Below are positions 25,005-53,859 of a stretch of DNA of 64,000 nucleotides, piece after piece. The stretch lies in sequence record PV654397.1, one strand, 5' to 3'. The notes beneath the pieces are model-generated. The model had not been told where the DNA came from and did not search any database. It saw nothing but the letters and a program-made list of their open reading frames with translations. Both the position numbers and the translations under genes were made by a program. Numbering within the stretch: position 1 is the stretch's first letter; each line of letters opens with the position of its first letter.

Positions 25005-25505
25005 TTAGGTCACAGCTTTGTATTTCTCCATTGCTTCGGTGATATTCAATACTGCTTGCGGTACGTCACTTTTGTTGTATGCAGTGGTTAGTTTTTCCAT
25101 GTTATTGAGAAGACTTAGAAACAATGGAAGTACTTCTGCATTGTCACTGAAGTTACAATCATTGACAGTACTCAATTGGAATAACTCACCTGCATCAACA
25201 TTGAGTGTGTTGTATTCTTTAACAATGTTTTCTTCAGTATTGAAGATGTAGAATACAGTCCCCATGTGGTGTAAGTATACACCAGTATCATTCTGAATAT
25301 GACATGGGGTGATTACAATTGCTGTGTTATCAATATTATTTACTATTGTCAAACGAAGACTATGTAACCCAAAGATTACAGTACAATCCTTTGTACTGTG
25401 TTGGATCTGGTCACTAGTAAAGGAAGACCCACTATGATTTTTAGATCCATTTAGTATTTCTTTGATAATTTTAAATGAATACTTCATCGAATTAGTTAAA
25501 AGCAT
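25005..25505 (-). CDS. family A paralog
   Basis: DAGELFQLSTV. Confidence 0.8.
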   Translation of the reverse strand: MLLTNSMKYSFKIIKEILNGSKNHSGSSFTSDQIQHSTKDCTVIFGLHSLRLTIVNNIDNTAIVITPCHIQNDTGVYLHHMGTVFYIFNTEENIVKEYNTLNVDAGELFQLSTVNDCNFSDNAEVLPLFLSLLNNMEKLTTAYNKSDVPQAVLNITEAMEKYKAVT

Positions 25506-25905
25506 GAACTTTACCTTTAAGTAAATTAATTAATGTTCGCATAGATTCAGTACTGACAGTACCAAAATCAACACCTAAGCACTCGTATTGAAAGAACTCA
25601 ATAGAATCAATTGAGTCCAAAGGAATCTCAACAACCTGATTCCCTATACCAGACATAGTAACATTGCTTTTATTAATCGTCAAGAAGTTTTTTGAATAAG
25701 TATTAAATTTTAGTGAAATCGCATCGGGGTGCTTTGTAACAATGCAGTACTGGGAGCCATACACATATAGTACTTTACTTTCACTAAGATCCGTTTTAAA
25801 AAAATGAATCCCATTGAAGTATTTCTCATTGGCTTTCATCGCCGCGATTAGTTCATCTGTTGTTGTTAACCTTGTTTCGTTCTTCGTTAAACTGTTGAAA
25901 AGCAT
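25492..25905 (-). CDS. family A paralog
   Basis: DSIEFFQYECL. Confidence 0.75.
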   Translation of the reverse strand: MLFNSLTKNETRLTTTDELIAAMKANEKYFNGIHFFKTDLSESKVLYVYGSQYCIVTKHPDAISLKFNTYSKNFLTINKSNVTMSGIGNQVVEIPLDSIDSIEFFQYECLGVDFGTVSTESMRTLINLLKGKVHAFN

Positions 25906-26326
25906 AGAATACTACCTTAACCATTTGTAGTGTTTCAGACATTACTTCTGATGAAAATTCAACATCATTGAATTTCAGCATAGTGTTCTGTGTAAAGAAA
26001 GTTGCTTCTAAGTCTTCCAGATTGAAGGGTTCATCAAACAAATTAGTACTGAACATGTCAGTCTTCTTCTTGTATGTGAACAAGAATTTGGAATTATAAC
26101 GAAGAACTATTTCATCTTTATTAACCAAAATACGTGCAATGTTCTGACGTGTCAATGTGGTAATGTTTAAATTGAACACGTTCTTGCGTGTTTCAGTGAT
26201 ATCAACAAAATACCCATCTCCCTGATGGATATTACATCGTACATCCAACCCTTTCTGTACTGTATTGAACAGTGCATCTTGAATAAAATAATTTGCTGTA
26301 TCGATGTTTCCTAAAATGTCTAACAT
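25853..26326 (-). CDS. family A paralog (degenerate motif)
   Basis: DLEATFFTQNTM. Confidence 0.65.
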   Translation of the reverse strand: MLDILGNIDTANYFIQDALFNTVQKGLDVRCNIHQGDGYFVDITETRKNVFNLNITTLTRQNIARILVNKDEIVLRYNSKFLFTYKKKTDMFSTNLFDEPFNLEDLEATFFTQNTMLKFNDVEFSSEVMSETLQMVKVVFYAFQQFNEERNKVNNNR

Positions 26327-26838
26327 AACTTCTCCTTGATTGCTGTCATATTTAGAAGAAATTCTTCAAGCAATTCCTCTGTAACATACTCAACATACCA
26401 GAATATCACAATATCTTTTGAAAGTCGAGTATTCTTAAAAATATCTACTAACTCTTTGTAGTACTCAAGATCATATACATCTTTTATAATTAGTGAGTAC
26501 TGAAATAGTGATTCTTCAGTTAACTTAAATTCTGGATATAGTAAGTCATTAAATTCTAATGATTCTGATTGTACTTTTATTTTAGTGAAGTCATTTGTTA
26601 ATCCACCATTACATCCATATAATGCAGCGTAATTCACGAACTTGGCTTTTGGATTAAAATCAAGAACAGTTTCACCATTATATGACAATCGGTGGAACGC
26701 CGTGAACTTTGTAATTTGCCACGGTTGCTTAATATCTAAGTCATTTATGTCTTTATTATTGTACATAAGAACAGTGAATATTTCAGCAATCTTCAATAAT
26801 AATTTAGTACGTGCTAGTACTGTCATAGGTTCAATCAT
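26320..26838 (-). CDS. family A paralog
   Basis: LTEESLFQYSLI. Confidence 0.8.
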   Translation of the reverse strand: MIEPMTVLARTKLLLKIAEIFTVLMYNNKDINDLDIKQPWQITKFTAFHRLSYNGETVLDFNPKAKFVNYAALYGCNGGLTNDFTKIKVQSESLEFNDLLYPEFKLTEESLFQYSLIIKDVYDLEYYKELVDIFKNTRLSKDIVIFWYVEYVTEELLEEFLLNMTAIKEKLC

Positions 26839-27251
26839 TATACACCTTCATATTCATCAAGGAAATCTTCGATGATCATTTCTGCGTCATCCATGTGCAT
26901 AGCATCAACTTCAACAATGCGAACCTTAGACGTATCCCAAATCATATAGCTAGGAACTGTATCTGGTTCGTAATCGTTTTTGTACTGAACTGCATCATAG
27001 CCGTTAATTTCGCAGTACTCAATCACTCCACGCCATTCGTCGTCACTGCCCATATCCGTCCACAGAAGCACGTTATCAACATCAACTTCTAAGGTATGTA
27101 AGTATACTGTATCAGCGTCAACAACGTTCAGTGGGCTTCTCAGCTTGCGTAATGCAGCTTCTAAAGCACTGTGTTTGCCACCCATATGAAGGCCACCATA
27201 CGGGATATAAAAGTTATCAATTTTTACAGTACTCGCATGATACAGTTTCAT
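26838..27251 (-). CDS. putative ADP-ribosyltransferase-fold protein (ART-PolyVal-like)
   Basis: LYHAS, GLHMG, GYDAVQYKNDYE...SY.IWD. Confidence 0.55.
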   Translation of the reverse strand: MKLYHASTVKIDNFYIPYGGLHMGGKHSALEAALRKLRSPLNVVDADTVYLHTLEVDVDNVLLWTDMGSDDEWRGVIEYCEINGYDAVQYKNDYEPDTVPSYMIWDTSKVRIVEVDAMHMDDAEMIIEDFLDEYEGV

Positions 27252-27260
27252 TATTCATTC

Positions 27261-27845
27261 CTATTTCAGTACTTTGACCAGGGCTTTAACCGCTGTTTCA
27301 AGTTGTGCAAAGTCGTTGATTGTAAGATAATGAATACCCAATGTACTCATTTCTGAATCTATTTTACTATACAAATCGAACATGTCAAGTAGATATTGAT
27401 ATGTATATGACTCCGATGACACACATGATTCTTGAAATAGACGTTCTTCCATATCATTTACTACTTCATCATTTGCGTCTCGAATCACACCATCTTTGTA
27501 TGTGTAGTAAATCTCATCCCATTCATCTGATAAGCGGAATAGTAAAGGTTTACCATTAAACATCTCAAGGTCATATGCATTGACTTCACTCAATAACATA
27601 TCATCAGGATCAGGTGTGAAATCGAATTGAGCGAGTGAAGAACCATCATAATCCTTAAGGAATACACCAATAGCATTCAATTTAACTTCGCCATAATTGC
27701 CATTCTTGAACTTTACACGAATATTAATATCAATGTTTTGAACAGTATCATCATCTTGGAATTGATAATCAATTTTATACTTTTCCCAAAGTTTTTTAAT
27801 ATCTTTAAAGTACTTAATTTTACTTTCTATTTCTTTAAAGTTCAT
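27261..27845 (-). CDS. family A paralog
   Basis: MEERLFQESCV. Confidence 0.8.
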   Translation of the reverse strand: MNFKEIESKIKYFKDIKKLWEKYKIDYQFQDDDTVQNIDINIRVKFKNGNYGEVKLNAIGVFLKDYDGSSLAQFDFTPDPDDMLLSEVNAYDLEMFNGKPLLFRLSDEWDEIYYTYKDGVIRDANDEVVNDMEERLFQESCVSSESYTYQYLLDMFDLYSKIDSEMSTLGIHYLTINDFAQLETAVKALVKVLK

Positions 27846-28437
27846 CTGGAACCGCCATCTCTTGTATGTTCTTGCATTTTATCATTGCACAATTAGTATG
27901 TAAAATGATAGCGTACTTGTGTAATGATTTAATTTTATAACACTCATTAAGTACTGAAATGATTCCCCATAACTCTTCTACATCAATAGTGATAGGTTCA
28001 CTAGTACTAAGTTGCATTAGTGCTGCTTCCACATCATCTTTGTTATTGATTTTGAACTGCATACCACGTTTCAGTATTTTGGTTTTTGGGTTATACTCTG
28101 CCATTACATCACCTTCAGGGTAACCCTCGTGTAATAATAATGTAGTCTCATAATCTCCACAATTGAAATTAATTTCATCATAGTCAGGAACACAAATCAT
28201 TCCTTCACCATATTGATTATCTACTGATTCGATTGTTAAAATACGCTGATGTTCATTACTCAGGATAATAGAATCATGCCAGTACTGCGTAGTGAATTTA
28301 CTACGTTTCTTTTGACAGCACATACTTGACATGGGACCATACTTTTTATATAGGGACTTCTTGAATGCTATCGCATCAGGAGCCACCTTAATAACTTCTC
28401 GAATTAGGTCAATAGCTTCTTGATAACTTTTTCTCAT
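27835..28437 (-). CDS. family A paralog (degenerate motif)
   Basis: VEAALMQLSTS; ATGA-coupled start. Confidence 0.7.
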   Translation of the reverse strand: MRKSYQEAIDLIREVIKVAPDAIAFKKSLYKKYGPMSSMCCQKKRSKFTTQYWHDSIILSNEHQRILTIESVDNQYGEGMICVPDYDEINFNCGDYETTLLLHEGYPEGDVMAEYNPKTKILKRGMQFKINNKDDVEAALMQLSTSEPITIDVEELWGIISVLNECYKIKSLHKYAIILHTNCAMIKCKNIQEMAVPDEL

Positions 28438-28985
28438 TTGTCGTACCCATATAAAATATGATCTAAAGTGCATTGAACTTCTTCATGGAAGAACAGTGGG
28501 TAAATTTGTATCAATTTTTCTTTAAGTTCAAGTGAATGGCATAATTCTAATGCTTTGATACAATCTTCATATTGAACTAAGCTATGTATTGTACTTAACT
28601 GGAAATGTTGTTCTTCAGAGTAAGCTAAATCATATACCAAATTATCATCTAAAAGGTTTGATTTCTTTGAAGGATCAAGTACTGTGTTGCTATGACCTAC
28701 CCAGAAAAATGCATTGGTGTTCATATTATTACAACCCCAACCTGCCCCCATTTTCTGGTGAATAGCAAAGACACAACTATCATAGAGATTAATACCAAGA
28801 CGCTCTTCGTTGACATAAATCGTAACACCATCGATTGTCATGGTTATTTGGAAACGCATTGAACCTTCACTTCGTGAACGTGCACAGAAGCCAAGATAAC
28901 GGTTGATAATTGTATTGATTTTATCTGCCCATCCTTCCACATCTTTGGATGCACATAATTTAAAAAGATCATGACTTTGATTCAT
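28434..28985 (-). CDS. family A paralog
   Basis: SEEQHFQLSTIH. Confidence 0.8.
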   Translation of the reverse strand: MNQSHDLFKLCASKDVEGWADKINTIINRYLGFCARSRSEGSMRFQITMTIDGVTIYVNEERLGINLYDSCVFAIHQKMGAGWGCNNMNTNAFFWVGHSNTVLDPSKKSNLLDDNLVYDLAYSEEQHFQLSTIHSLVQYEDCIKALELCHSLELKEKLIQIYPLFFHEEVQCTLDHILYGYDK

Positions 28986-28996
28986 GTAGTTCTCCG

Positions 28997-29578
28997 TTAA
29001 TCAAGCATAAGTGGCATCATCGCCCATATCTTTTTCATAATCATATCTTCAGTAAAAACAAACGTTTTAGGTGCAGTATATGATATTGACAACCCAAATG
29101 GAAGTACGATTGCATCATCAATTATATTATGAATATCAAACCATGTTTTTACACAATCATATGGTGGAAGTTCATGTATTGTACTTAACTGAAAGTATTG
29201 TTCTTCACCAAATGTACTGCAATCAATATCACAAATTTTAGTGAATTGTTGATTCCATTTAGATATAATACTGTTTTTATTATTGAACATATTAGTTCTA
29301 TGCATGAAACCATTTCTGCTAATATGATTTGATATTGCGTTTTCTTCAATATCATTGCTTATTTTAAAATTCATGTCAAAGTTGTAGTGCGAACTCGACG
29401 ATTCTTTGAATTTTAAATGAAAATAACGATTGTTATTAATTTCCATTTCAATACAAAACACATCTGAATCAAAACGATTAAACTTGTAATCGTTGTCTTC
29501 AGGTAGAGTCTGTAATTTTTTCATAACACCAAGCATAGGGTGCACTAAGCTTCTAATAAAATCATTAGTTATTTTCAT
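28997..29578 (-). CDS. family A paralog
   Basis: GEEQYFQLSTIH. Confidence 0.8.
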   Translation of the reverse strand: MKITNDFIRSLVHPMLGVMKKLQTLPEDNDYKFNRFDSDVFCIEMEINNNRYFHLKFKESSSSHYNFDMNFKISNDIEENAISNHISRNGFMHRTNMFNNKNSIISKWNQQFTKICDIDCSTFGEEQYFQLSTIHELPPYDCVKTWFDIHNIIDDAIVLPFGLSISYTAPKTFVFTEDMIMKKIWAMMPLMLD

Positions 29579-30071
29579 AGTATTCCTTTAGAACTTTAAA
29601 TGATTCAACAATACTATCTTGTGTGTAATTAGAACTATATACAATTGCATTTGATTTGATTGACCACAGATATGACATAAAGGTTATAACACTACTACAT
29701 GAACTTAATGTATTGTTTTGGAATTCATTTTCTTCAATGTTATCAGTACTGGTATTGATGAATTGGATAGTATCTTGTTTCTGATTAGACATTGAAACTA
29801 AAGTACAATCAGTATAAGGAGTGTACAAAAACGTCTCATTACTAATTGAACTATCATTAGTATATGATGGTTTGGTAATATAAATCAAACGCATGATATC
29901 ACGCTCAATACCCGATTTACGACTTTCCACTAAAGAAATCATATCTATATTTTTCATATGATCAACATTGACATGGAACTTTTTGTTTAGAATTACATCT
30001 TTTGGGGAATTTTTATATGAAGATAAGATCTCATACATCTCAACTAATTCTCGTGCATTTAATAAACTCAT
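29565..30071 (-). CDS. family A paralog
   Basis: IEENEFQNNTL. Confidence 0.75.
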   Translation of the reverse strand: MSLLNARELVEMYEILSSYKNSPKDVILNKKFHVNVDHMKNIDMISLVESRKSGIERDIMRLIYITKPSYTNDSSISNETFLYTPYTDCTLVSMSNQKQDTIQFINTSTDNIEENEFQNNTLSSCSSVITFMSYLWSIKSNAIVYSSNYTQDSIVESFKVLKEYYENN

Positions 30072-30496
30072 GTTTTGTCTCTTAATGAAAGAATATCCTT
30101 AGTATAAACTGATATAGAAATGTGATTGTATTTCATCATTAATTTATACACATAAGAAGCTAGTACTAAATCGTAAATTAATTTAGTATCATACAGTACT
30201 CCGTATTGTAAAGCAAGTGAATCAATATCATCTTTACTTTCAATATCCAGAAATGTGCCGAAATATGTAGTACCGTGGAGATGAAAATTGGAATTAATGC
30301 AATCAATGCATTCATTGTCCAACAGAGTAGATGATGATGCCCTCGGTGAATCCCAAATAGTCACTGCGTGTATGCCCTCAACGAACAAATCTATCCATAT
30401 TTTGTGTCGTTGTCTTTTTTTTGTTTTATAATTTTCTGGATTTGAAAGTGTAGTTTCAATTATATCCCATATGTATAAGCATTCATCTCTTGTCAT
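30068..30496 (-). CDS. family A paralog (degenerate motif)
   Basis: DIDSLALQYGVLYD. Confidence 0.65.
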   Translation of the reverse strand: MTRDECLYIWDIIETTLSNPENYKTKKRQRHKIWIDLFVEGIHAVTIWDSPRASSSTLLDNECIDCINSNFHLHGTTYFGTFLDIESKDDIDSLALQYGVLYDTKLIYDLVLASYVYKLMMKYNHISISVYTKDILSLRDKT

Positions 30497-31074
30497 TATA
30501 GCACCTTGTCCATTGCTGCATTTAATGCTTTTAAACGATCAACATTCAAAGTATTGAAGATGTACGTTCCTAAAATGTGGAAATCGAACTGGTTCTTTTT
30601 GTATGTGTGATAAATTAAACTACAAAAAACAACAGTACTAAGAACCTCTTCCGGTATAACGGTGCTCATCTGAAACAGTTCTTCATCAACTGTACTTGAT
30701 TCTGGATTGATAGCTTTTAACTCATACTCTTTATCACCGAATAGTACTTTAATATTATATAAAACACCAACAGTACTAATATGAAATGGATGGTGTGAAA
30801 AACTTCCATCATCATTAATTTGGATATCGGATCTAATCTCGCACTCTTCATTACTTTTACTATTATTTTTTACAATACAAATATTCCTGGCACCAGAAAT
30901 AGTAAGAATACCGTGATCGTAATATTCTTTGGACATACATTTAGATGAAAATGACACATCACGAATGAGGTAATGTTTGTTAATTTCTTTTGCACTACCA
31001 ACAATGTGTAGCATCTTTGTACTGATATCATATAGCTGTTGGTGGCGGTCTGTCATATAACTATAAGCGTTCAT
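30496..31074 (-). CDS. family A paralog
   Basis: VDEELFQMSTVI. Confidence 0.8.
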   Translation of the reverse strand: MNAYSYMTDRHQQLYDISTKMLHIVGSAKEINKHYLIRDVSFSSKCMSKEYYDHGILTISGARNICIVKNNSKSNEECEIRSDIQINDDGSFSHHPFHISTVGVLYNIKVLFGDKEYELKAINPESSTVDEELFQMSTVIPEEVLSTVVFCSLIYHTYKKNQFDFHILGTYIFNTLNVDRLKALNAAMDKVL

Positions 31075-31645
31075 ATGTATCCTTGATGTTTTTGATTGCC
31101 GTGTGTAGCTCTTTTAATGTATCGGATTCACAGTTAATGAACTTACTATACATTACCAATTCGCCAGTGTCAATAGCTTTTGCAGTTTCATAGCAAAGCA
31201 TCATGTACTCAAATTCCTTGAAGTTGTCAAGTACTGATCTCTGGAAAATGTATGCTTCACGAATGTCTTCACTTTGATCTAGTTCTGGTGGAATTTCCAA
31301 ATATGTATCATTCTCTACGTCATCAAAATTAGATTCAACAATTCGATTAATATCTTCGTGTAAAGCATTGACAAATATCATGTTTGGAGTAATGGAACCG
31401 ATTTGCTCACTATGCCTTGATGTGCGGATATACATTGCCATAGTATCCCATGAACCTTTTTTCGTCGTTCCATAATCGTAAACTTTATAAGACTCCAGTA
31501 CTACTGAACCAAAACGATATGGTGATTTGCATTCAACTTTAAGACGATAATTTCCAATAGGCTCATGTTCAGTAATGTTGTGCTTTTCAGATAGTTCTGC
31601 AATGTCATGCATCAATTTCATAATTTGAATGTGTTCAGCTTGCAT
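31061..31645 (-). CDS. family A paralog
   Basis: REAYIFQRSVL. Confidence 0.8.
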   Translation of the reverse strand: MQAEHIQIMKLMHDIAELSEKHNITEHEPIGNYRLKVECKSPYRFGSVVLESYKVYDYGTTKKGSWDTMAMYIRTSRHSEQIGSITPNMIFVNALHEDINRIVESNFDDVENDTYLEIPPELDQSEDIREAYIFQRSVLDNFKEFEYMMLCYETAKAIDTGELVMYSKFINCESDTLKELHTAIKNIKDTYERL

Positions 31646-32208
31646 TATAAGTCCTCTAATTTAACAGGTACATGTTCATTGATGAACGTCTTAAGAGCCA
31701 GTACTAGATCTTCTAATTCTTCTGTACTGAATTTTAATATAGTTTTAAAGATTATCAATTCATTTCTTTCTATAATCTTTGGAATTTCATATGCTAACAT
31801 AAGATTGCGAACAGTACCAGCGTTGTGTATGAGGTTCGCATTGAATAAAAGTACATCGTACTCGTCTTTTTTAATTTTATAATTGTACTCTTCAATTACT
31901 TCATGTGTGTATGTATTCTTATAGGCAATTTTATTTTTATGAAATTTATAACCAACAGTAACACTATCATCATAAAATGTAGAACGATAATCTTGTTTTC
32001 TATCGCCGGACGAAATGATGTGTAATGCTGTGTATTTGTCCTCAACATCTAACTCAATGTTTGCATAACTGTTAACGGTTTCATTCTTTAGGACGTTAAT
32101 GTTATATTTCTCATTAACTTTAATGTACTGGCGTGCACCATTATCATCAATGAACTTAAAACAATGCTTTACCAACAATGTGATTTCTTTAATTAATTCA
32201 GTACTCAT
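31645..32208 (-). CDS. family A paralog (degenerate motif)
   Basis: EYDVLLFNANLIH. Confidence 0.65.
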   Translation of the reverse strand: MSTELIKEITLLVKHCFKFIDDNGARQYIKVNEKYNINVLKNETVNSYANIELDVEDKYTALHIISSGDRKQDYRSTFYDDSVTVGYKFHKNKIAYKNTYTHEVIEEYNYKIKKDEYDVLLFNANLIHNAGTVRNLMLAYEIPKIIERNELIIFKTILKFSTEELEDLVLALKTFINEHVPVKLEDL

Positions 32209-32235
32209 ATCTTCTCCTGTACTCTGTTAAAAGCG

Positions 32236-32264
32236 ATTATAACACACCTGAATGCTCATGTAAA
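32236..32264 (-). promoter_or_regulatory. sigma70 promoter
   Basis: TTTACA-N17-TATAAT. Confidence 0.8.
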
Positions 32265-32275
32265 GCACTAAACAC

Positions 32276-32296
32276 AAAAAGACCCATGAGGGTCTT
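32276..32296 (-). terminator. intrinsic terminator
   Basis: AAGACCC-tcat-GGGTCTT then T-run. Confidence 0.75.
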
Positions 32297-32814
32297 TATT
32301 TTGGTAAAACGCTGTCAATGTACGCTAGAGCCTCATCTCGGAGGTACGTTCCATCTATTGTTATGTAATAGTTCTTAGGGATATCACTACCAATCTTCTC
32401 GTAAATTTTCATACATGATATCACATCTTCATCACAAATGGTACTCAATTGAAACTGTACTTCATCAGTTAAAGGTACGATATCATGTTTAGATGGGGGG
32501 TTGGTATTTTCATTCAAAACAATATCAAACAAATTAGGAGTATTCTTTGACGAAATGTAACGATGTTTACTACGAATTACCATTCTCGACAGAGAAATAC
32601 TGGAACTCCATCTTGGGTCCACATCTTCGTATGTTAACGCAATTAACATTTCATAATAATCTTGGAATTTCATTGATGCATAATATGTTTTGTCCTCACC
32701 GTACATTCCAAATGATTTGAATTCAATGTCACCTACATTGTGTGTATCGCTATCACTATTCACGAATTTTAACAGACTGTTGATTAGTCTGATTAGAATA
32801 TCATCTTTATTCAT
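32296..32814 (-). CDS. family A paralog
   Basis: LTDEVQFQLSTI. Confidence 0.8.
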   Translation of the reverse strand: MNKDDILIRLINSLLKFVNSDSDTHNVGDIEFKSFGMYGEDKTYYASMKFQDYYEMLIALTYEDVDPRWSSSISLSRMVIRSKHRYISSKNTPNLFDIVLNENTNPPSKHDIVPLTDEVQFQLSTICDEDVISCMKIYEKIGSDIPKNYYITIDGTYLRDEALAYIDSVLPK

Positions 32815-33373
32815 TATCAGATAACTCCCTGTGCATGTTGTATAAATCTCTAAAGTCCTGATAGAAATCTTTTTCTTCAAGAATATCTTTTAAACTAGGA
32901 ATCTCATCCATAATCTCATCGATATCAGTTTCAATAGTAAAACCTGATTTATAATTTTGTAAGAGATAACTAAAAGCAACAAGATAAAGAATTTCATTTG
33001 GTTTATGAATTAACATGTGTTGGAACATAACTGATTCTAAATCAGATTCAGTACTAAGGTCAGCATAACATGTATCGTTGGTGTCAATTCGTACTGTACT
33101 TGAATTTGGATTCCATGTAAAGCAATGTGTTCCAACTGTTCCCAAACATCCTACTCTTGTACTATCATTTGTTCCCAAAAAGATATAAAAATACGTTTCA
33201 TCTGTATAATCGTATTTTTGTACTTTACCTTTTTTAAGGCATAAATCATTATCCTTTCGAAAAGTTTTAGATGATAGTGTATCAATGATGCACATTAATG
33301 TTTTTGCAAATGCAATACAATGACGTAATTCAAGTCTATGGAAATTATAATTAGTAAAATTCATAAAATTCAT
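32807..33373 (-). CDS. family A paralog
   Basis: LESVMFQHMLIH. Confidence 0.8.
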   Translation of the reverse strand: MNFMNFTNYNFHRLELRHCIAFAKTLMCIIDTLSSKTFRKDNDLCLKKGKVQKYDYTDETYFYIFLGTNDSTRVGCLGTVGTHCFTWNPNSSTVRIDTNDTCYADLSTESDLESVMFQHMLIHKPNEILYLVAFSYLLQNYKSGFTIETDIDEIMDEIPSLKDILEEKDFYQDFRDLYNMHRELSDNE

Positions 33374-36088: not shown

Positions 36089-36121
36089 TGTGATATAACC
36101 CTTTACAATTAATATAAAGAG

Positions 36122-36681: not shown

Positions 36682-36688
36682 ACTAACC

Positions 36689-41523: not shown

Positions 41524-41525
41524 TA

Positions 41526-42433: not shown

Positions 42434-42434
42434 A

Positions 42435-42961: not shown

Positions 42962-42962
42962 A

Positions 42963-44064: not shown

Positions 44065-44109
44065 TTCAATCGTAATCTCTACTATAATTAATAAGGTAAA
44101 CGCCAATAT

Positions 44110-45399: not shown

Positions 45400-45409
45400 T
45401 GTACTTTCC

Positions 45410-45754
45410 TTACATATTTGTACCGAACAAAACGGAACTTTGAATGCCATTAATCGACACTTCATGTACATATATATTTTGTCTGAATACCTGAAGCAAT
45501 TGAACTAAACTTTGTTGCATAATAATATGCATCGCTAAATTATCAAAGGCCGTTTCGTGTTGGAATCGTGCAGCTTCATCTTCTATGAAATTCGGAACTT
45601 GGACTGGATTCTCAAAATTTGTCCTTGTACTGAACTGTACATCATTGTCCTGTACCTTAATACCATATGAATTATCATTGTTATCAACTACATCAAATTC
45701 AATTAAACTACCATCTTTACTGACGTTTACTATATAAACTGAAAATCTACTCAT
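45410..45754 (-). CDS. family A paralog (short form)
   Basis: DEAARFQHETA. Confidence 0.75.
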   Translation of the reverse strand: MSRFSVYIVNVSKDGSLIEFDVVDNNDNSYGIKVQDNDVQFSTRTNFENPVQVPNFIEDEAARFQHETAFDNLAMHIIMQQSLVQLLQVFRQNIYVHEVSINGIQSSVLFGTNM

Positions 45755-46269
45755 AATCCTATTTCCTTTAAATCTTCCAAAAATGTTTCATAATCACTTA
45801 AGGAAAAAAAGATATCCGTATCGATGTTCGCATCTAATACATTATACAAATTCTGCATCTGTAACACATCAGGAGCATCAATCAATGATTGCTGGAAATA
45901 TGCAGCTTCATCTTCTAAAATATCCCTGAATGTTCTCTCTCGTACTCTGTGGTGTACTGAATTGAATATTGTTTTCTCATCCTTAAGCATTGGTAGGTAT
46001 CGAATGTACATGTGTTCTCTTAGCTCAGGACTGATGGAACCCCTGAACTGTAACACGTATTCGAAGCACATAGCAACATCCTGAAGGTAATTGGCACTGT
46101 AATTATTGCTGTAAACAATCTTATGACTTCTGAACTCATCATCATTTCTGAACCAATTGTCACCTACTCTGGTGTACTTATGACTAAGCAATCCACCCTC
46201 TAACGCTTTGATGATCTTCAAAATGTTGTGTGCAAATGCATATGATGTATTGTACTTGGCCTGATACAT
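45751..46269 (-). CDS. family A paralog
   Basis: DEAAYFQQSLI; ATG 46269 after GAGG. Confidence 0.8.
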   Translation of the reverse strand: MYQAKYNTSYAFAHNILKIIKALEGGLLSHKYTRVGDNWFRNDDEFRSHKIVYSNNYSANYLQDVAMCFEYVLQFRGSISPELREHMYIRYLPMLKDEKTIFNSVHHRVRERTFRDILEDEAAYFQQSLIDAPDVLQMQNLYNVLDANIDTDIFFSLSDYETFLEDLKEIGL

Positions 46270-46282
46270 GTGTGCCTCAACC

Positions 46283-46477
46283 TTATCTTGTGTTAAAATA
46301 TTCACTGAAATGATTATAACACAAAAGCACCACGATGTTAAGCACTCTGTTGTCAAAATCATCTTGTGATGTAGGATGCAAGGACGCATTGATGTTAAAA
46401 TTCACTATATCATTGTGGAATTGGTATGTGAACAAATCAAACTTCGTATGCCTTTGTTTGATATCATAGGCGGTCAT
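46283..46477 (-). CDS. small hypothetical protein
   Basis: 64 aa. Confidence 0.55.
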   Translation of the reverse strand: MTAYDIKQRHTKFDLFTYQFHNDIVNFNINASLHPTSQDDFDNRVLNIVVLLCYNHFSEYFNTR

Positions 46478-46478
46478 A

Positions 46479-47087
46479 TTATATATTCAACCCTTTAACA
46501 ATGGAAATAAATTCTTTGTAAACATTTTCAGGTAAAGCTCTACTACCATAAAGAACACTAAATTCAGGTAACATATCCGAAATCTCTTTCGCTAAATTTA
46601 TTTCATCCCTGAACATTTGCACAGGCATGATATCCTGTACCAATGATAACTGAAAGAAAAATGATTCAATATCTTCATGCACCTCTGAATTTAAATAAAT
46701 CTCTTCTGGAAACTGGGCTGTACTGTAATAATAAAATACATCAATTCTTTTTTCATTATTTTGTACAAGAGGTAAATTTCTTTCGTCTCTCTTATTAATA
46801 TTTGTTTTCCATGACTCAATGTTATTCGGAACCCAAAACTCATAAGGTGTCTTCTCTCCTGAAATATTATCCAGCTTCAATCCATAATATTCACTTTCGC
46901 CGTACTTTTGCTTCAAAACAATACCTGTACTACTGATGTTTACAATGTACGTATCAACAATCCCTTCTGTGGTAAAAGGAATATTTAACTCTGAACCTTC
47001 AGGGTACTTAGCATTGAATGCATCTAATGCTTTACTTAGCACTGGAATTGTATTTGTACTGTACTTCATTAATTGGTCTATGTTCAT
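46479..47087 (-). CDS. family A paralog
   Basis: IESFFFQLSLV. Confidence 0.8.
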   Translation of the reverse strand: MNIDQLMKYSTNTIPVLSKALDAFNAKYPEGSELNIPFTTEGIVDTYIVNISSTGIVLKQKYGESEYYGLKLDNISGEKTPYEFWVPNNIESWKTNINKRDERNLPLVQNNEKRIDVFYYYSTAQFPEEIYLNSEVHEDIESFFFQLSLVQDIMPVQMFRDEINLAKEISDMLPEFSVLYGSRALPENVYKEFISIVKGLNI

Positions 47088-47659
47088 TTTAATTCCCCTG
47101 TAATCACTGCATTTACTGCACTTGATGCAAATAAACTGATATTTGAACGATACATATCGTACACTGTACTTTCTTTCTTGTGCACAATGAAATCATAAAG
47201 ATCGACGAATGCAGGAATAATAATCTTGAATGATTTATTTGGGTACGTCCCAAAATCAACTGTACTCAATTTTGCAACGAGCATAACAACAAAGATTTCT
47301 TCTGGACTATGCAATGTACTGTACTGAAAATATTCCTCAGCACTCATGGCACTTATTGCATTTATATCTTGTGTTTGTAATGTAATATTAAGATATTCAA
47401 AAATAGAATAAAACTCTGATTTTGTTTGTATTTTGTATTTGTCAATTGGGGTATCTCTCATGAACCATAAACGATCTTGTCCATAAAAAGGAATGATTGA
47501 ATTTGGGGAAGCCAGAAATACTTCTTCTCTATCAATATCCTTTAACTCAATTTGCATACCGGATGAATTGGCAATAATTAATTCATTAAAAATATAATGA
47601 ACCTTGTGTACAATCTCTTGTACTGAATTGAAATCATCTGGTATTTTAAAATTTTCCAT
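47084..47659 (-). CDS. family A paralog
   Basis: SAEEYFQYSTLH. Confidence 0.8.
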   Translation of the reverse strand: MENFKIPDDFNSVQEIVHKVHYIFNELIIANSSGMQIELKDIDREEVFLASPNSIIPFYGQDRLWFMRDTPIDKYKIQTKSEFYSIFEYLNITLQTQDINAISAMSAEEYFQYSTLHSPEEIFVVMLVAKLSTVDFGTYPNKSFKIIIPAFVDLYDFIVHKKESTVYDMYRSNISLFASSAVNAVITGELK

Positions 47660-47717: not shown

Positions 47718-47746
47718 AAAAAAAGCCCATATCTTACGATACAGGC
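47718..47746 (-). terminator. intrinsic terminator
   Basis: GCCTGTATC-gtaa-GATATGGGC then T-run. Confidence 0.8.
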
Positions 47747-48231
47747 ATGTTTATTTGAATTTCATTGTACAAATCATCAATATATAGACATGAAAACGAT
47801 AAACTTTCTTTAACTATATTGTTGTGATAAAGCATTTTAAATGCAATATAGAAAAATAAATCAATATCATCATGTACTAAATTCTGCTGGAACCACCACT
47901 CTTCTGTTAAATCTTGTGCATTAAAATCATCAGGAACTACAATTGACGACATATCAGCATCTTCTTTGTACTCAAACCACATGTCGTCATTTGGATAACG
48001 TTCATGCTTCTCTGGGTAACAATTGCTGGGATTAAATGCTAAAATATAAAATGCCGTCGCAGAATGTTCTTTATTATAAAATGAATTATTCCACACCTGA
48101 TACCTTTCACCAACATCAAACTCTTTTGATACTGATGTTATTGCACATAATGTACGATATATTGTTTCTATTTTGTGAACAAATTTAAAGGCTGCATCTA
48201 AACTGAACTCTAAATCAGACATGCGGTGCAT
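47734..48231 (-). CDS. family A paralog
   Basis: LTEEWWFQQNLVH. Confidence 0.8.
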   Translation of the reverse strand: MHRMSDLEFSLDAAFKFVHKIETIYRTLCAITSVSKEFDVGERYQVWNNSFYNKEHSATAFYILAFNPSNCYPEKHERYPNDDMWFEYKEDADMSSIVVPDDFNAQDLTEEWWFQQNLVHDDIDLFFYIAFKMLYHNNIVKESLSFSCLYIDDLYNEIQINMPVS

Positions 48232-48551
48232 AAAATTACCTCAACTAAAATAAGAACGGTATTGAATTCGATGCAACCTTTGATACCTTGATTGTACATG
48301 TACTTTGCTACTACATATTTCTGTACTAAATTATAATTATTAAATTCCTCAAAATTGTAATTTAGAATGAAATTTGTACTCAAAAATAACTTATGCATCT
48401 CTAATGCACTCTGATAATATTTGTACAACTCTCTGATATCAATACTTTGTAAATCACTTTGTTCATATCTATGATAAGGAATGGCTTCAATTTCAATACT
48501 ATAAAACCATTCTCTTAACTTCTTAATATCAAATGTATTATTCAGCTTCAT
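48210..48551 (-). CDS. hypothetical protein
   Basis: 113 aa, overlaps both neighbours. Confidence 0.65.
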   Translation of the reverse strand: MKLNNTFDIKKLREWFYSIEIEAIPYHRYEQSDLQSIDIRELYKYYQSALEMHKLFLSTNFILNYNFEEFNNYNLVQKYVVAKYMYNQGIKGCIEFNTVLILVEVILCTACLI

Positions 48552-49107
48552 AACTCAATACCTCCATTAAGCACTCATAAACACCATCAATCGCATAAGC
48601 ACAAAAACTGAAATTAATTTTGTTATTCTTGTGTAATGGACTATTGTATACTGTACTCAACATAACACTATAAAACAAAGAACGTTCATGTGTAAATAAT
48701 GATTCCTGAAAAAATGCTTCCTCTGATTTAATTTTATTATATTCAATCGATTGATCATTAGAATAAAATGAATCTTGATTTGAATTGTACCATGTGTAAT
48801 CCAAATCATTCTTTGATATAACTGGTGTTGGATTAAACTGTAAAAGACTAATAACACTACGGGCATTTGGGGTATCAGGTGTATTGAATCGTTTGTCAAA
48901 ATAACTTGTGCACGCAATATGTGAATCAAAATCAGATGGTTTAAACCCCATGAATGCGTTAATGATTCTTGTATATGGTTTTTTATTATGTGCTGCTTTT
49001 TGTACATTATATAAGGCTGCAACAATACAAGCTAACTTTTGTCCCATTAGGATTGCATTAGCGTAGGTGTACTGAATTTCATTGCTGGTACGGTACTTCG
49101 AGATCAT
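48538..49107 (-). CDS. family A paralog
   Basis: SEEAFFQESLF. Confidence 0.8.
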   Translation of the reverse strand: MISKYRTSNEIQYTYANAILMGQKLACIVAALYNVQKAAHNKKPYTRIINAFMGFKPSDFDSHIACTSYFDKRFNTPDTPNARSVISLLQFNPTPVISKNDLDYTWYNSNQDSFYSNDQSIEYNKIKSEEAFFQESLFTHERSLFYSVMLSTVYNSPLHKNNKINFSFCAYAIDGVYECLMEVLSYEAE

Positions 49108-49429
49108 GGAACAGCCTCACTTTGCCTAACTCGTCATTGGATATTAATTCGTTAACAGCTTTCTGTATATTCCTTAATAATAGCACATCAAATCCTTTTG
49201 TGTCAAGCACACATTGCATTTGGAAGAATTCTTCTTCTGATAATGTATTAAAATCCACAAAATTGTCTAATATTACGTCATTATCCAAATGTGCCATGTG
49301 CCATGTATTTCTTTCGGAGCGTTTAATAAAATTCCATCCATCTGGATAATCGGGTTCTAATTCTACATATATCCCTGATAATGTATAAAGCATTTTATAC
49401 TTCATAACTATTGTACTCATTGCTTTCAC
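49079..49429 (-). CDS. family A paralog (short form)
   Basis: LSEEEFFQMQCV. Confidence 0.8.
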   Translation of the reverse strand: MKAMSTIVMKYKMLYTLSGIYVELEPDYPDGWNFIKRSERNTWHMAHLDNDVILDNFVDFNTLSEEEFFQMQCVLDTKGFDVLLLRNIQKAVNELISNDELGKVRLFHDLEVPYQQ

Positions 49430-49737
49430 TGTACGTCGATGTCATAATACGCTCCTACTTCATAATCTTTCTTGCTTTGGAATTCATTAACGACTTTCTG
49501 TATATTTCTTAATGTTACCATGTCATGTCCGTACATGTCAACCACCAATTGCATTTGGAAAAATTCTTCTTCAGATAATGTATTAAAATCTATAAAATAA
49601 TCCGTAACAACATGTGCGTCTAAATTTGCCATGTACCATTGATTGGTATCGACCTCTTTAACCAAATTCCATGCATCTGAATCGGATTCTAATTCTACAT
49701 ATATTAATGTTAATGTATACAGCATTTTATACTTCAT
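49426..49737 (-). CDS. family A paralog (short form)
   Basis: LSEEEFFQMQLV. Confidence 0.8.
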   Translation of the reverse strand: MKYKMLYTLTLIYVELESDSDAWNLVKEVDTNQWYMANLDAHVVTDYFIDFNTLSEEEFFQMQLVVDMYGHDMVTLRNIQKVVNEFQSKKDYEVGAYYDIDVQ

Positions 49738-50233
49738 AACTATATCCTTGCATTAATAAATCATAAACGTTTGAAAGGTGCGGAATTTTGATATAAAATT
49801 TAAAACCCTTAATTAAAGGATTCGCGTACAATGAACTGAATAACTTTAGATAATGTATTTGACGAGGACTGTATAATAACGATTTCTGAAATAATTCAGC
49901 ACTACAATCTGAACTAATATCAATTAAATCAATTCGTGCTTCTACTTCATCATCTTGTTTCAAAACATAAAAGAAATAATCGTTTGTGTTGACCCACAAA
50001 TACCCTTCACTATTTTCGTATATAACAGGAGATGCTTGTTCTGGATTGCCTTGGGCAAATGCTGCAAAACAAACTTTTGCATTACTTTCATCTTTAAACA
50101 TAAACGATAATTTATCATATCTATCTTCTATGCGTAAATCACCTATAAAAATGTACTTATGCATAGAATGATTATTCTTGAGCATAAGCATTACTGTACT
50201 AATCTTGTGTGCTAATAATTCTATCTCATTCAT
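49727..50233 (-). CDS. family A paralog
   Basis: SAELFQKSLLY. Confidence 0.8.
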   Translation of the reverse strand: MNEIELLAHKISTVMLMLKNNHSMHKYIFIGDLRIEDRYDKLSFMFKDESNAKVCFAAFAQGNPEQASPVIYENSEGYLWVNTNDYFFYVLKQDDEVEARIDLIDISSDCSAELFQKSLLYSPRQIHYLKLFSSLYANPLIKGFKFYIKIPHLSNVYDLLMQGYSYEV

Positions 50234-50239
50234 ATATTA

Positions 50240-50320
50240 TTACCTATTGATAGATACATCGTCATTGACTTCTAATTCAACATAAATCATATCTTTTGTA
50301 TACAGCATTTTATACTTCAT
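50240..50320 (-). pseudogene. truncated copy of the 49426-49737 paralog
   Basis: MKYKMLYTKDMIYVELEVNDDVSINR-stop; 43-bp exact repeat 49714-49756 and 50297-50339. Confidence 0.7.
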
Positions 50321-50870
50321 AACTATATCCTTGCATTAAAAGATCATAAGCAATATCAACTAATTCTAAACGAATGAAAAATTTTAAATTATCTTTCAAT
50401 GGATTCAAATGCATTGTACTAAACAACATAAGATACTTCATTTGATTTGTATTGTATATTAGGGATGTCTGAAATACTTCTGCTTCATTGTAAGGATCAA
50501 TGAATTTTATACCTTCTTCACTATAATCCGTTTTGGAATTTTGATATATAAAATAATCATCACCATAATTGTACCACAAATAACCTTCAAAACTGGAATC
50601 AAATTCTGAATTTTCATTTCGCATTAAAGGTGATACTGAAATTGGATTTGAACCAACTGTTGCACAAACCTCAATGAAAGCATCTTCATTTCCCTTAACT
50701 TCTTCTTTGATTTTATCATTGTACTGTCCTGCAAAACCAGCTTTTACTTCCAAATATAAACTACTCCCAACTTTATTAATTCTTAAAAGGGAACTCTGTA
50801 CTGTATTCGCATTGTTCAGCACTAACGATATTGTGCAAATCTTATGTACCAATAACTCAATATCATTCAT
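50310..50870 (-). CDS. family A paralog
   Basis: EAEVFQTSLIY. Confidence 0.8.
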   Translation of the reverse strand: MNDIELLVHKICTISLVLNNANTVQSSLLRINKVGSSLYLEVKAGFAGQYNDKIKEEVKGNEDAFIEVCATVGSNPISVSPLMRNENSEFDSSFEGYLWYNYGDDYFIYQNSKTDYSEEGIKFIDPYNEAEVFQTSLIYNTNQMKYLMLFSTMHLNPLKDNLKFFIRLELVDIAYDLLMQGYSYEV

Positions 50871-50881
50871 ATTGGTATTCC

Positions 50882-51064
50882 TTAATTTGGTGGATTTGGA
50901 TGTAATAACTGATCTATATAATTTAAATGTTCTATTGTAACTAATGAAAGATAATAATTGTAATTATCTATACCACCCTTTAAATGTATATTGTAATACA
51001 TCTTGATACTTACTAATAAAGAATCATTTAAATCATTTATTGCTTTTGTATTAACGGTTTTCAT
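50882..51064 (-). CDS. small hypothetical protein
   Basis: 60 aa, TAATG-coupled. Confidence 0.6.
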   Translation of the reverse strand: MKTVNTKAINDLNDSLLVSIKMYYNIHLKGGIDNYNYYLSLVTIEHLNYIDQLLHPNPPN

Positions 51065-51186
51065 TAATGTTCTTCTCTTAAAAAACGCTTAATGGCACAA
51101 TCTAAATAAAAATCATAATACATCATATCTCTATTCTTAACCCATACACAATAATCTGCATTAATATTTCTTAATAATATATTCAT
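51064..51186 (-). CDS. 40-aa protein missed by ORF track
   Basis: MNILLRNINADYCVWVKNRDMMYYDFYLDCAIKRFLREEH. Confidence 0.5.
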   Translation of the reverse strand: MNILLRNINADYCVWVKNRDMMYYDFYLDCAIKRFLREEH

Positions 51187-51203
51187 ATTATAATCTTCAC
51201 ACC

Positions 51204-51614
51204 CTAATCGTGCCATTTAATAGGATACTCCGTTCCATTTATTGTATAAGATATAATCCATCCGTAATGAATAGGATGATTTTTGTCTGAATCAGGAATA
51301 AAATATAAAGATGTACTGGGGTTATAACTGAATAAATCGTTGTTACCAATTGTAAAATGTGATAACTCAATCTTCCTTGTACCTGTACTTGGACGAAGAA
51401 CATTCTTAACACCGAAGACTGTACCTTGATATTTCTCGGAAAATTCAAACAATGCATCTGCAATTAAATCACGAAACTCCGCATGTATGGTTTCAAAAAA
51501 ATCTATATTACACGATGTTTTAATATCCTTGAACTCCTTATATAAAGAGCTTCTTGTATTCAAAAGAAATATTACTTTTTTAAGATCCTGAACTATTTCT
51601 GGATTCATATTCAT
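51204..51614 (-). CDS. hypothetical protein, family C-like
   Basis: FSEKYQGTVF. Confidence 0.65.
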   Translation of the reverse strand: MNMNPEIVQDLKKVIFLLNTRSSLYKEFKDIKTSCNIDFFETIHAEFRDLIADALFEFSEKYQGTVFGVKNVLRPSTGTRKIELSHFTIGNNDLFSYNPSTSLYFIPDSDKNHPIHYGWIISYTINGTEYPIKWHD

Positions 51615-51843
51615 TTATCTCATTCTGTAACTTATGCATCAAAATTTGTATATTAATTTTTCGTCCAAGGTGATTGAGAAATTTCTGTACCATTTCTTCT
51701 TGTACTGATGTACCAAGATAAAATAACATATTAAATTCCGATAACCTCAGAGCAAAATCGTCATCTCCCCCTTGTAAACAAAAATCCCTGTACTTTGATG
51801 CATACAAATAACGGTTTATTTTTTTGTACATTTGGGTCTGCAT
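51580..51843 (-). CDS. family B paralog
   Basis: YLGTSVQEEMV. Confidence 0.8.
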   Translation of the reverse strand: MQTQMYKKINRYLYASKYRDFCLQGGDDDFALRLSEFNMLFYLGTSVQEEMVQKFLNHLGRKINIQILMHKLQNEINEYESRNSSGS

Positions 51844-52028
51844 TGTATCTCCTTTTTCATGCACCTTATTAGATTATCAACGTATTGATCCTGTACTATT
51901 GTCCCTAGATAAAATGATACTTCGAACTCTGATAATTTTATATTGAAAGGATCTACATATACATCTTTAATAAACTCTTTGTACTTCAACATATATGCAT
52001 TAGGTATATTCTTATATATCGATTTCAA
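51816..52028 (-). CDS. family B paralog
   Basis: YLGTIVQDQYV. Confidence 0.8.
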   Translation of the reverse strand: MKSIYKNIPNAYMLKYKEFIKDVYVDPFNIKLSEFEVSFYLGTIVQDQYVDNLIRCMKKEIQCRPKCTKK

Positions 52029-52323
52029 TGATCCTCCCTGACATACCTTGTATTAGCTTATCATACATATCGAGCATCACTTTTTGAATACTAATTAATA
52101 CTGGCATCGTGCAAATATCAATGTCGTATATTAAGCTGTACTGGAATAATTCCTCTTCCTGCATGTGTACTAAATTAGGTAAAAGATAATTGTCTGCCTC
52201 TTCATCCTGGTACTTGAAATGCATAACACCATCCTTTTTGTACAAAAGAATGTCAATATCACCTAACTCTTCTGCATAACCAAAAATACATATACTCGAT
52301 GTTTTTGCTATATTAAATTTCAT
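52012..52323 (-). CDS. family A paralog (short form)
   Basis: QEEELFQYSLIYD. Confidence 0.8.
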   Translation of the reverse strand: MKFNIAKTSSICIFGYAEELGDIDILLYKKDGVMHFKYQDEEADNYLLPNLVHMQEEELFQYSLIYDIDICTMPVLISIQKVMLDMYDKLIQGMSGRIIEIDI

Positions 52324-52332
52324 ATTCTTCTC

Positions 52333-52656
52333 TTATATGTAGAATTCACATACGCGTTGAACAAAATTCTTTGGAAGATGACAATGTGCAATCATCTGCT
52401 TTTGTACTTCCTTCATGTCTTCGAATGTAAATCCTAAAGAATCATCATGTACTAACAAGTACTGAAACTCTTCTTCTTCAGAGATAGAACATAAATTCGG
52501 TACTGAAATTGTTTTTGCTTTTCTTGCACCCAATTTCCAATGAAAAGAATTATTGCATTTTCTGTACTCAAATATCTTCAACCCAGAACCTGTATTAAAA
52601 TCAGCTACTACAATGTAACATGAATTCTTACGTACAATACAATTGAACTTACGCAT
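52333..52656 (-). CDS. family A paralog (short form)
   Basis: SEEEEFQYLLVHD. Confidence 0.8.
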   Translation of the reverse strand: MRKFNCIVRKNSCYIVVADFNTGSGLKIFEYRKCNNSFHWKLGARKAKTISVPNLCSISEEEEFQYLLVHDDSLGFTFEDMKEVQKQMIAHCHLPKNFVQRVCEFYI

Positions 52657-52901
52657 TATCTCCACCTCTCTCCGTCTGTACAAGAGTACTGGTACGTTGT
52701 CGTTAGGGTAGGGACCATGTTTGTAATGGGCATGTTGTTAACAATAACCGTAACAGGCATAAGAATCGTCTCTACTCTACTCTGTCCTGTCCTTGTACAA
52801 TTCATCTTCTGCATTTCATCTGAATCCATGAAATACAATACAAATGGTGCAATCCCAAGAACAATACACAAGACGATAAGGAAATTTAAAAAATTCAACA
52901 T
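52656..52901 (-). CDS. small membrane-anchored protein
   Basis: N-terminal TM segment, Cys pair. Confidence 0.7.
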   Translation of the reverse strand: MLNFLNFLIVLCIVLGIAPFVLYFMDSDEMQKMNCTRTGQSRVETILMPVTVIVNNMPITNMVPTLTTTYQYSCTDGERWR

Positions 52902-52930
52902 AATTTTTACCCCATGATTAACGTACAGGT

Positions 52931-52959
52931 ACTATATCAGTAATGAAAAGTACTGTCAA
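52931..52959 (-). promoter_or_regulatory. sigma70 promoter
   Basis: TTGACA-N17-TATAGT with TGA extension; AGTACT shares the last A of -35. Confidence 0.8.
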
Positions 52960-52960
52960 G

Positions 52961-53335
52961 CTAGTATTGCACTGTTCTAATGAAAGTACCTTTACTCATG
53001 GATTTAAGCTTATGAACCTCTTCCTGCATACCCTTAATTAACCCTAAAGGTATAGGTAAATCATGTACTAAGCTGTACTGAAAGTATTCTTCTTCAGATA
53101 AAGTACTAACATCTGGAATGCCAATTTTAGTTAGATAATCTTGATGTGTTGACCAATAAATTATATCTTCAGTACTATTGTACTCCCCATATACTGAACA
53201 ATATTGATGAATATCTTTCCTGTACCCTTGAGCAATAAAGAACTTATCTACTGCATTACCAGCATTAATAGAATTCACTTCGATTGTCACAGTACTTGAG
53301 CTTGTTTTTCCTTTACTATGCATATTAATCCCCAA
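52961..53335 (-). CDS. family A paralog (short form)
   Basis: LSEEEYFQYSLVHD. Confidence 0.8.
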   Translation of the reverse strand: MGINMHSKGKTSSSTVTIEVNSINAGNAVDKFFIAQGYRKDIHQYCSVYGEYNSTEDIIYWSTHQDYLTKIGIPDVSTLSEEEYFQYSLVHDLPIPLGLIKGMQEEVHKLKSMSKGTFIRTVQY

Positions 53336-53511
53336 ATTAGATATCGAACACTATCAGCTTGATAGTTAGTTCCTACTGTGTGTTTTAATATTAACTCATC
53401 TTTCAGTACTGAACATTCTGCATTAGATATAGGAAGAGAATTAATTCTTTGAATTTCTGGTCGCAAAATACCGCGAAGCTTGCGGTAATCTTCGTATGAT
53501 AATATTTTCAT
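53287..53511 (-). CDS. family B paralog
   Basis: TVGTNYQADSV. Confidence 0.8.
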   Translation of the reverse strand: MKILSYEDYRKLRGILRPEIQRINSLPISNAECSVLKDELILKHTVGTNYQADSVRYLIWGLICIVKEKQAQVL

Positions 53512-53514
53512 TGT

Positions 53515-53859
53515 TTAGTACTCAACGATGTGTTCTTCATAATCACCATTAGGCTCCTGTTTAGATTCTTTCATTAGTACTACCATTTTATGTACTAATG
53601 GCATAGGAAACTCCAAATCCCATACTAATGATTCTTGAAAGTATTCCTCTTCAGATAAAGTACTTAAATCTTTAATATCAACGTGCTTGTATATTTTATT
53701 TTCGTAATTAACAAATGATATATATAAATCACTAACATAAGAATCATAGGTAATTGTGAATGGTTTACCCTTGTAATCCATTACATCTCTACATAGACTA
53801 CTTTTGATATATGTATGTTCAAATGATTTATATACCTTGAGTTGTATATTAGTTTTCAT
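53515..53859 (-). CDS. family A paralog (short form)
   Basis: LSEEEYFQESLVWD. Confidence 0.8.
   Translation of the reverse strand: MKTNIQLKVYKSFEHTYIKSSLCRDVMDYKGKPFTITYDSYVSDLYISFVNYENKIYKHVDIKDLSTLSEEEYFQESLVWDLEFPMPLVHKMVVLMKESKQEPNGDYEEHIVEY

Follow-up and report, generated by a model that had tools for sequence, protein, structure and literature searches.

The window analysed here is a stretch of 64,000 nucleotides that is 100% identical to Escherichia phage WPEC5 (PV654397.1, 381 kb), a 121Q/PBECO4-like jumbo phage (Asteriusvirus) infecting E. coli; window position x corresponds to PV654397.1 position x + 299562. Between positions 25005 and 53859, where every gene lies on the minus strand, the window carries a long array of diverged paralogs that share a short motif centered on an F-Q pair. 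Iterated hidden Markov model (HMM) searches defined one protein family (referred to below as the FQ family) consisting of 45 minus-strand open reading frames (ORFs), of which 44 are located in 25005-53859 and one at 13235-13924. The members, the other ORFs interspersed with them, and the intergenic promoters and terminators are as follows.

13235-13924 (-): outlying member, 229 amino acids, motif SEEEHFQLM (HMM E 5.5e-16; leave-one-out E 1.3e-4; F-Q in the family column)
25005-32208 (-): array segment 1, 7 members (25005-25505, 26320-26838, 27261-27845, 28434-28985, 28997-29578, 30496-31074, 31061-31645)
25492-25905 and 29565-30071 (-): probable degenerate members in segment 1
25853, 27835, 30068, 31645 (-): ORFs of segment 1 with only motif-like variants
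26838-27251 (-): unrelated ORF in segment 1, 137 amino acids, phrog_11632; starts with M-K-L-Y-H-A-S and has a G-G-x-H-x-G-G stretch; no Pfam match
32297-32278 and 32264-32236 (-): hairpin terminator, then a sigma-70-like promoter (TTTACA, 17 nt, TATAAT, TG); intergenic, consensus match only
32296-36088 (-): array segment 2, 7 members (32296-32880, 32807-33373, 33896-34390, 34378-34791, 34775-35137, 35130-35612, 35609-36088)
33370-33915 (-): ORF of segment 2 not detected as a member
36122-36151 (-): perfect sigma-70 consensus promoter, 12/12 (TTGACA, 18 nt, TATAAT, TG), in the gap 36088-36148
36148-44106 (-): array segment 3, 16 members; first eight 36148-36738, 36689-37027, 37017-37376, 37975-38571, 38884-39420, 39417-39863, 39860-40303, 40303-40617; last eight 40614-41057, 41032-41523, 41526-41966, 41963-42433, 42617-43033, 42963-43328, 43325-43684, 43681-44106
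40614-42433 and 42617-44106 (-): sub-clusters within segment 3
37382-37984, 38519-38746, 38688-38915 (-): non-members in segment 3
44845-47659 (-): array segment 4, 4 members (44845-45471, 45751-46389, 46479-47087, 47084-47659)
45410-45754 (-): ORF of segment 4 with the degenerate motif RFQHE
47746-47725 and 47715-47687 (-): hairpin terminator, then a promoter (TTGACA, 17 nt, TACAAT, TG); intergenic, consensus match
47734-52901 (-): array segment 5, 8 members (47734-48231, 48538-49107, 49079-49429, 49426-49737, 49727-50233, 50310-50870, 52012-52323, 52333-52683)
48210, 51204, 51580, 51816, 52656 (-): non-members interspersed in segment 5
52931-52959 (-): promoter (TTGACA, 17 nt, TATAGT, TG) in the gap 52901-52961; consensus match
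52961-53859 (-): array segment 6, 2 short-form members (52961-53335, 53515-53859)

Definition of the family and its motif

An earlier note on this DNA had described an array of diverged, motif-bearing paralogs, and the profile searches bear this out: the members were detected at E <= 1.3e-9, the best shuffled decoy reaching 0.003. FQxS was present in 36 of the 65 minus-strand ORFs of at least 70 amino acids within 25005-53859, but in only 1 of 83 ORFs outside this region. Over 1000 shuffles the number of ORFs with FQxS averaged 1.33 and never exceeded 7. The enrichment over shuffled proteins, a check that the note had proposed, is therefore far above what the shuffles give. In all 45 members F-Q falls in one alignment column, and F and Q are the sole invariant columns. 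The consensus is [ST]-E-E-x-[YLF]-F-Q-x-S-[LT]-[VIL]-[YHW]-[DN] for the window members and D-x-[ST]-x-[LM]-[ST]-E-E-x-[YLF]-F-Q-x-S-[LT]-[VIL]-[YHW]-[DN] over 186 sequences. The 12-residue pattern originally given for the array thus stands as a consensus, but its literal form, written as a slightly relaxed regular expression, matches only 6 ORFs. Leave-one-out profiles recovered 42 of the 45 members, and the membership of those at 31061, 38884, and 46479 depends mainly on the motif. Two or three more array ORFs (25492, 29565, and 45410) have degenerate motifs, two degenerate-motif ORFs outscore all decoys, and decayed versions (FFQYE, EFQNN, RFQHE, MQLST, and LQYGV) were seen in several ORFs that are not counted as members.

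The codons used at F, Q, and S vary synonymously, with both serine codon classes in use. Therefore, the constraint on the motif acts on the protein, and a DNA-level element as the cause of its conservation was rejected. A Gln-specific protease cleavage site was also considered improbable, given that Q is followed by a variable and often large residue, that the motif is predicted to be helical, and that the family members are not processed virion components.

A profile scan of all 45 members against Pfam-A and NCBIfam gave no match at the cut-off and no family matched by more than one member, and the best E-value of the family profile against PDB sequences was 0.11, which is not significant. 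In PHROGs, the members are spread over at least 31 groups, all of "unknown function" (9317, 12674, 13866, 15629, 22855, 19795, and at least 25 more; E 1e-40 to 1e-155). These groups were built from these same proteins and their orthologues, but the shared F-Q motif and the common fold are unrecorded there. No description of the family, motif, or fold was found in the literature searched, and no named anti-defence family surfaced in general searches, none of which was aimed at anti-defence proteins. Across Pfam, NCBIfam, PHROGs, PDB, and this literature, the statement that these paralogs have no assigned function thus holds. Their paralogy had previously been noted only in general terms for phage RaK2, nearly 10% of whose gene products are paralogues, with no family or motif named (PMC3622015). 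Proteins dispersed among dozens of orphan groups in the databases are now joined by one motif, and a large block of jumbo-phage dark matter becomes addressable with one experimental design.

The recognition consensus of the tobacco etch virus (TEV) protease is E-x-x-Y-x-Q-G/S. The motif reads E-E-G-Y-F-Q-G in 39417-39863 (-) and E-E-M-Y-F-Q-G in 35130-35612 (-), both of which fit this consensus. The fit is probably a coincidence; it calls for practical caution when TEV-cleavable tags are used on these two proteins.

Predicted structure

Long and short forms of the family, already distinguished in the earlier note, are both present, and one of each was modeled with AlphaFold. The long form 41032-41523 (predicted local distance difference test score [pLDDT] 81, predicted template modeling score [pTM] 0.76) consists of an N-terminal helix, seven strands, and then helices, with the motif helix at residues 109-115 and a block pLDDT of up to 97. 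The short form 53515-53859 (pLDDT 82, pTM 0.75) has five strands, the motif helix (70-79), a second helix (86-98), and a final strand. Since the two models agree, the shared core is predicted to be a meander sheet backed by a helix-loop-helix. The 10-residue blocks holding the motif had a mean pLDDT of 94-97 in both models and were their most confident part; in neither model was the motif found in a disordered or flexible segment outside the folded domain. When the motif is drawn as a helical wheel, positions -4, +3, and +4 fall on the face of F, and the variable positions -2 and +2 fall on the opposite face. Conservation of hydrophobic residues at -1, 0, +4, and +5 is compatible with packing, and S-E-E has the form of a classical N-cap. 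From the wheel and the N-cap we infer that the motif forms the packing face of a core helix and would be largely buried. Its position in the most confident part of a compact predicted domain of sheet plus helices argues against a detachable docking peptide. Structure prediction, which had been suggested for members of the array, thus placed the motif of the two modeled proteins as a short helix inside one compact alpha+beta domain, and the picture of variable domains carried on a shared docking helix was not borne out.

Comparison with known folds gave no significant match. Foldseek returned nothing with E <= 0.001 for either form, the best VIA-align Z values were 3.0 (long form) and 5.3 (short form), neither significant, the search for ESM Atlas look-alikes gave no usable match for two members, and in the Atlas shape search TM was <= 0.31 (long form) and <= 0.52 (short form), the matches not agreeing on any one family. 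Like the FQ models, the polo-box and MAM33/p32 (gC1qBP) have an antiparallel meander sheet backed by helices, and p32 agrees with the long form in the order of its elements (N-terminal helix, seven strands, C-terminal helices) and in its strong acidity. However, against the short-form model MAM33/p32 gave a weak Z of 4.3-4.4 over 88-93 residues, below the tool's meaningful level, and the polo-box gave a Z of 5.0-5.3 over 70-72 residues, below the tool's caution line, with no Pfam POLO_box match. A homodimer prediction for 41032-41523 scored 0.00, which counts neither for nor against a dimer. Predicted viral structures with the same fold came from phages 121Q, RaK2, GAP32, Serratia BF, and Yersinia fHe-Yen9 and from Erwinia phages, and all are uncharacterised.

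Distribution and evolution

Approximately 35 Asteriusvirus (121Q/PBECO4-like) records match the window at 78-98% nucleotide identity. The whole WPEC5 record gave 59 profile matches, 45 in the window and the others in a second array at 60-106 kb. This array (PV654397.1 60000-106500, outside the window) contains about 19 FQ-motif ORFs of 120-190 amino acids, with the motif nearer the C-terminus, interspersed with a phage sigma factor, three HNH endonucleases, tRNAs, and a DNA methyltransferase. Together, the 45 window members and these ORFs amount to approximately 64 of the 749 annotated WPEC5 features (roughly 8-9%). Profile matches were also obtained in phAPEC6 (54), Klebsiella phage Muenster (36), RaK2 (34), CBB (9), and GAP32 (7), with none in PA5oct; the family is carried by related phages of Klebsiella, Cronobacter, and Pectobacterium and by uncultured relatives, and metagenomic contigs hold 15-34 members per 20 kb. 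Only 145 of 1.84 billion cluster representatives searched matched, 143 of them with the motif. A 773-amino-acid database match was discarded as a spurious 53-residue tandem repeat that is not a relative. A narrowed alignment scan detected no relative in the bacterial genomes scanned, and IMG/VR gave only 121Q. The HMM search of phage proteomes called for in the earlier note thus confined the family to RaK2-like enterobacterial jumbo phages, to which, as judged from sequence comparison, it is specific.

For 19 of the 45 members, the closest paralog in sequence is no more than two ranks away in the array, compared with approximately 11% expected by chance. The three local sub-clusters reported earlier (40614-42433, 42617-44064, and 49079-50870) proved to be real, with 33-57% identity between neighbours. 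Tandem duplication and divergence, as a lineage-specific expansion in RaK2-like jumbo phages, is our best reading of these sequences for the origin of the family.

One-to-one orthologues in phAPEC6 were found for 39 members, and about 5 of 44 had none. The median identity to these orthologues was 72% and the median omega 0.26; identity was 70% in the N-terminal part, 82% in the motif, and 76% in the C-terminal part. Pooled omega was 0.285 for the part preceding the motif and 0.221 for the motif together with the part following it, so that the variable half is the faster-evolving one; in 21 neighbouring genes it was 0.140. Nucleotide identity was 79% in the array versus 86% in the nearby ligase region. 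These values indicate that the array genes, though constrained, evolve at about double the rate of the genes around them and that turnover of copies is modest. In most Asteriusvirus records, the same 13-16 genes lie beneath a 5.6-kb probe.

Expression signals and protein properties

The earlier note had located internal sigma-70 promoters at 32236, 36122, 47687, and 52931 and had taken them as a sign of early expression. The four sites are present: they have 11-12 of 12 sigma-70 matches and an extended -10 TG, are intergenic, and lie on the coding strand, and two of them directly follow hairpin terminators. Early timing fits these sites and is plausible from the promoter consensus. Thirteen sites with at least 11/12 matches were found in 24000-64000, all on the coding strand. 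Since the total count of promoter-like sites does not exceed that of shuffles, only the top sites carry weight.

The family is acidic (median pI 4.8, median net charge -9). No member has a hydrophobic segment of transmembrane strength except 45751-46389, where the stretch is probably an artefact of an N-terminal ORF extension. The published virion proteome of phAPEC6 comprises 62 proteins, and the orthologues of the family, gp404c-gp466c, are not among them (PMC7247149).

Possible functions of the FQ family

The reading that we prefer, to which we assign a probability of roughly 40%, is that the array encodes an early cytoplasmic library of binders built on one scaffold, in which a helical keel carries a variable sheet surface, probably directed against host or defence proteins. 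The proteins would be small, mostly acidic, cytoplasmic, and non-virion. Each would be a single alpha+beta domain whose variable part is a five- to seven-stranded antiparallel sheet, backed by the conserved helix-loop-helix keel with the motif as its first helix. S-E-E would cap and start this helix; the residues packing onto the sheet would be the invariant F, its aromatic neighbour at -1, and the L/T-V/I pair; and Q and S would keep a fixed polar contact. The array genes would be read early by the host sigma-70 RNA polymerase, and the paralogs would act as stoichiometric binders, each sheet surface having a different host or defence protein as its target. If the paralogs do bind host proteins, the array is a natural inhibitor library on one scaffold.

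Several observations weigh against such a library. A binding partner is known for no family member, and we only infer the "anti-defence or host takeover" role. The array is syntenic and under purifying selection genus-wide, with no gross sign of positive selection; anti-defence islands typically show faster turnover. Early proteins of phages are often acidic. In one run of raw RNA reads, none fell on 31500-37400. The invariance of F-Q involves some circularity, since the detection of members depends in part on this pair, and array ORFs that have MQ, LQ, FN, or a similar variant in its place score below the threshold.

The model of the earlier note, in which an exposed conserved motif docks every paralog on one partner while the variable part selects targets, as in an adaptor or substrate-receptor library, appears unlikely to us. 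F and Q are strictly identical in 143 database clusters and in the 45 window members, which is beyond the usual need of a hydrophobic core; E-E, Q, and S could make one polar patch; and the phage-encoded ClpP-family protease in the same window (described below) is a conceivable shared machine. However, the motif lies in a well-packed helix of very high confidence and not in a disordered tail, its conserved hydrophobic neighbours fit a core, and no partner has been identified. In a specific and considerably less probable version, the F-Q helix-hairpin would dock the paralogs on one machine, such as a Clp-type protease around the phage ClpP, and the sheets would pick host or defence proteins for removal. 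Because F-Q is strictly identical and the phage encodes its own ClpP, we keep the adaptor library as an open reading; if the substrate-receptor version is true, the family would be to a bacterial virus what the F-box/PRANC families are to large eukaryotic viruses.

Service in the phage's own development, as regulators, replication or assembly chaperones, or timing factors, would agree with the strong synteny and purifying selection across the genus and with the position of the second array around a phage sigma-factor gene. We doubt this role: so many divergent copies are unusual for housekeeping functions, the orthologues are absent from virions, the genes evolve about twice as fast as their neighbours, and some members lack one-to-one phAPEC6 orthologues.

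Still less probable is a pocket, lined by the F-Q-x-S helix, in which all paralogs would bind one small ligand, for instance an immune signal derived from nucleotides, and so act as sponges, or else a minimal catalytic site. An invariant aromatic residue together with Gln and Ser is a plausible set for base stacking and hydrogen bonding. Small size, early expression, and a cytoplasmic location are features of the phage sponge proteins described so far and would also be features of the FQ proteins. On the other hand, a single ligand would hardly call for approximately 45-64 paralogs per genome, the searches returned no fold or sequence match to a known sponge or enzyme, and the homodimer prediction lent no support to an oligomer. 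The lack of a known function and the decayed motifs of some copies might suggest that most of the array is duplicated DNA that the phage could do without, the individual copies having no function. This is highly improbable in view of the intact frames, an omega of approximately 0.26, orthologues kept in about 30 genomes, and the protein-level constraint on the motif.

The binder library can be compared with known systems. Bacillus phage G carries a zinc-ribbon family of roughly 35 copies (PMC7824862). Like this family and the RaK2 paralogues, the FQ family places dozens of small paralogs without a known role in one giant phage genome, but it differs from the former in fold and motif and is without metal ligands. 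Its arrangement also resembles that of tandem families in other viruses. Large eukaryotic DNA viruses have multigene families (MGFs) near their genome ends, for example the MGF of African swine fever virus and the ankyrin/PRANC proteins of poxviruses. These, too, are tandem paralogs that have diverged, with a C-terminal module that is conserved and a part that binds targets and varies; however, they have no sequence or fold relation to the FQ family, whose host is bacterial and whose link to a degradation machine is only conjectured. In polyimmunity loci, small alpha+beta immunity proteins such as SUKH occur in tandem arrays. The FQ array would share with them tandem small paralogous binders with variable surfaces, but there is no sequence or fold match, the FQ family was not found in the bacterial genomes scanned, and no toxin partner is known.

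Neighbouring genes and other elements

Another family of paralogs, comprising roughly 30 tandem ORFs of 65-95 amino acids with the core [LF]-[YL]-[LV]-G-T-x-x-Q-E (phrog_4148, unknown function), lies on the same strand as the FQ array and immediately upstream of it (51580-59408, 38519-38746, 38688-38915, and 59808-60005).

The gene at 32-727 (-) encodes a clear ClpP-family protein (PF00574, E 1.3e-41) annotated as "head maturation protease" in WPEC5. Since the phAPEC6 proteome names another gene, gp227c, as prohead protease, the product of 32-727 may be a non-virion phage-encoded ClpP.

Two identical 28-nucleotide hairpins with 12-bp stems are located at 61558-61585 and 63818-63845 (-), each embedding the TTGACT -35 box of a promoter-like site; none would be expected by chance.

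The window contains one run of undetermined bases.

44156-44205 (no strand): 50 N, an assembly gap or masked stretch, in an intergenic spacer; no family gene broken

The run lies inside a 160-nucleotide spacer that is bounded on one side by the start of ORF 43681-44106 and on the other by the stop of ORF 44267-44491, and a coordinate check of the window ORFs found no family ORF spanning it. In the identical record PV654397.1, window position 44100 corresponds to 343662 and 44206 to 343768; these mapped coordinates place the flanks collinearly with exactly 50 bases between them. On both sides of the run, the spacer (44107-44155 and 44206-44266) contains G- and C-rich runs and partly inverted words, which suggests that it is a structured intergenic element.

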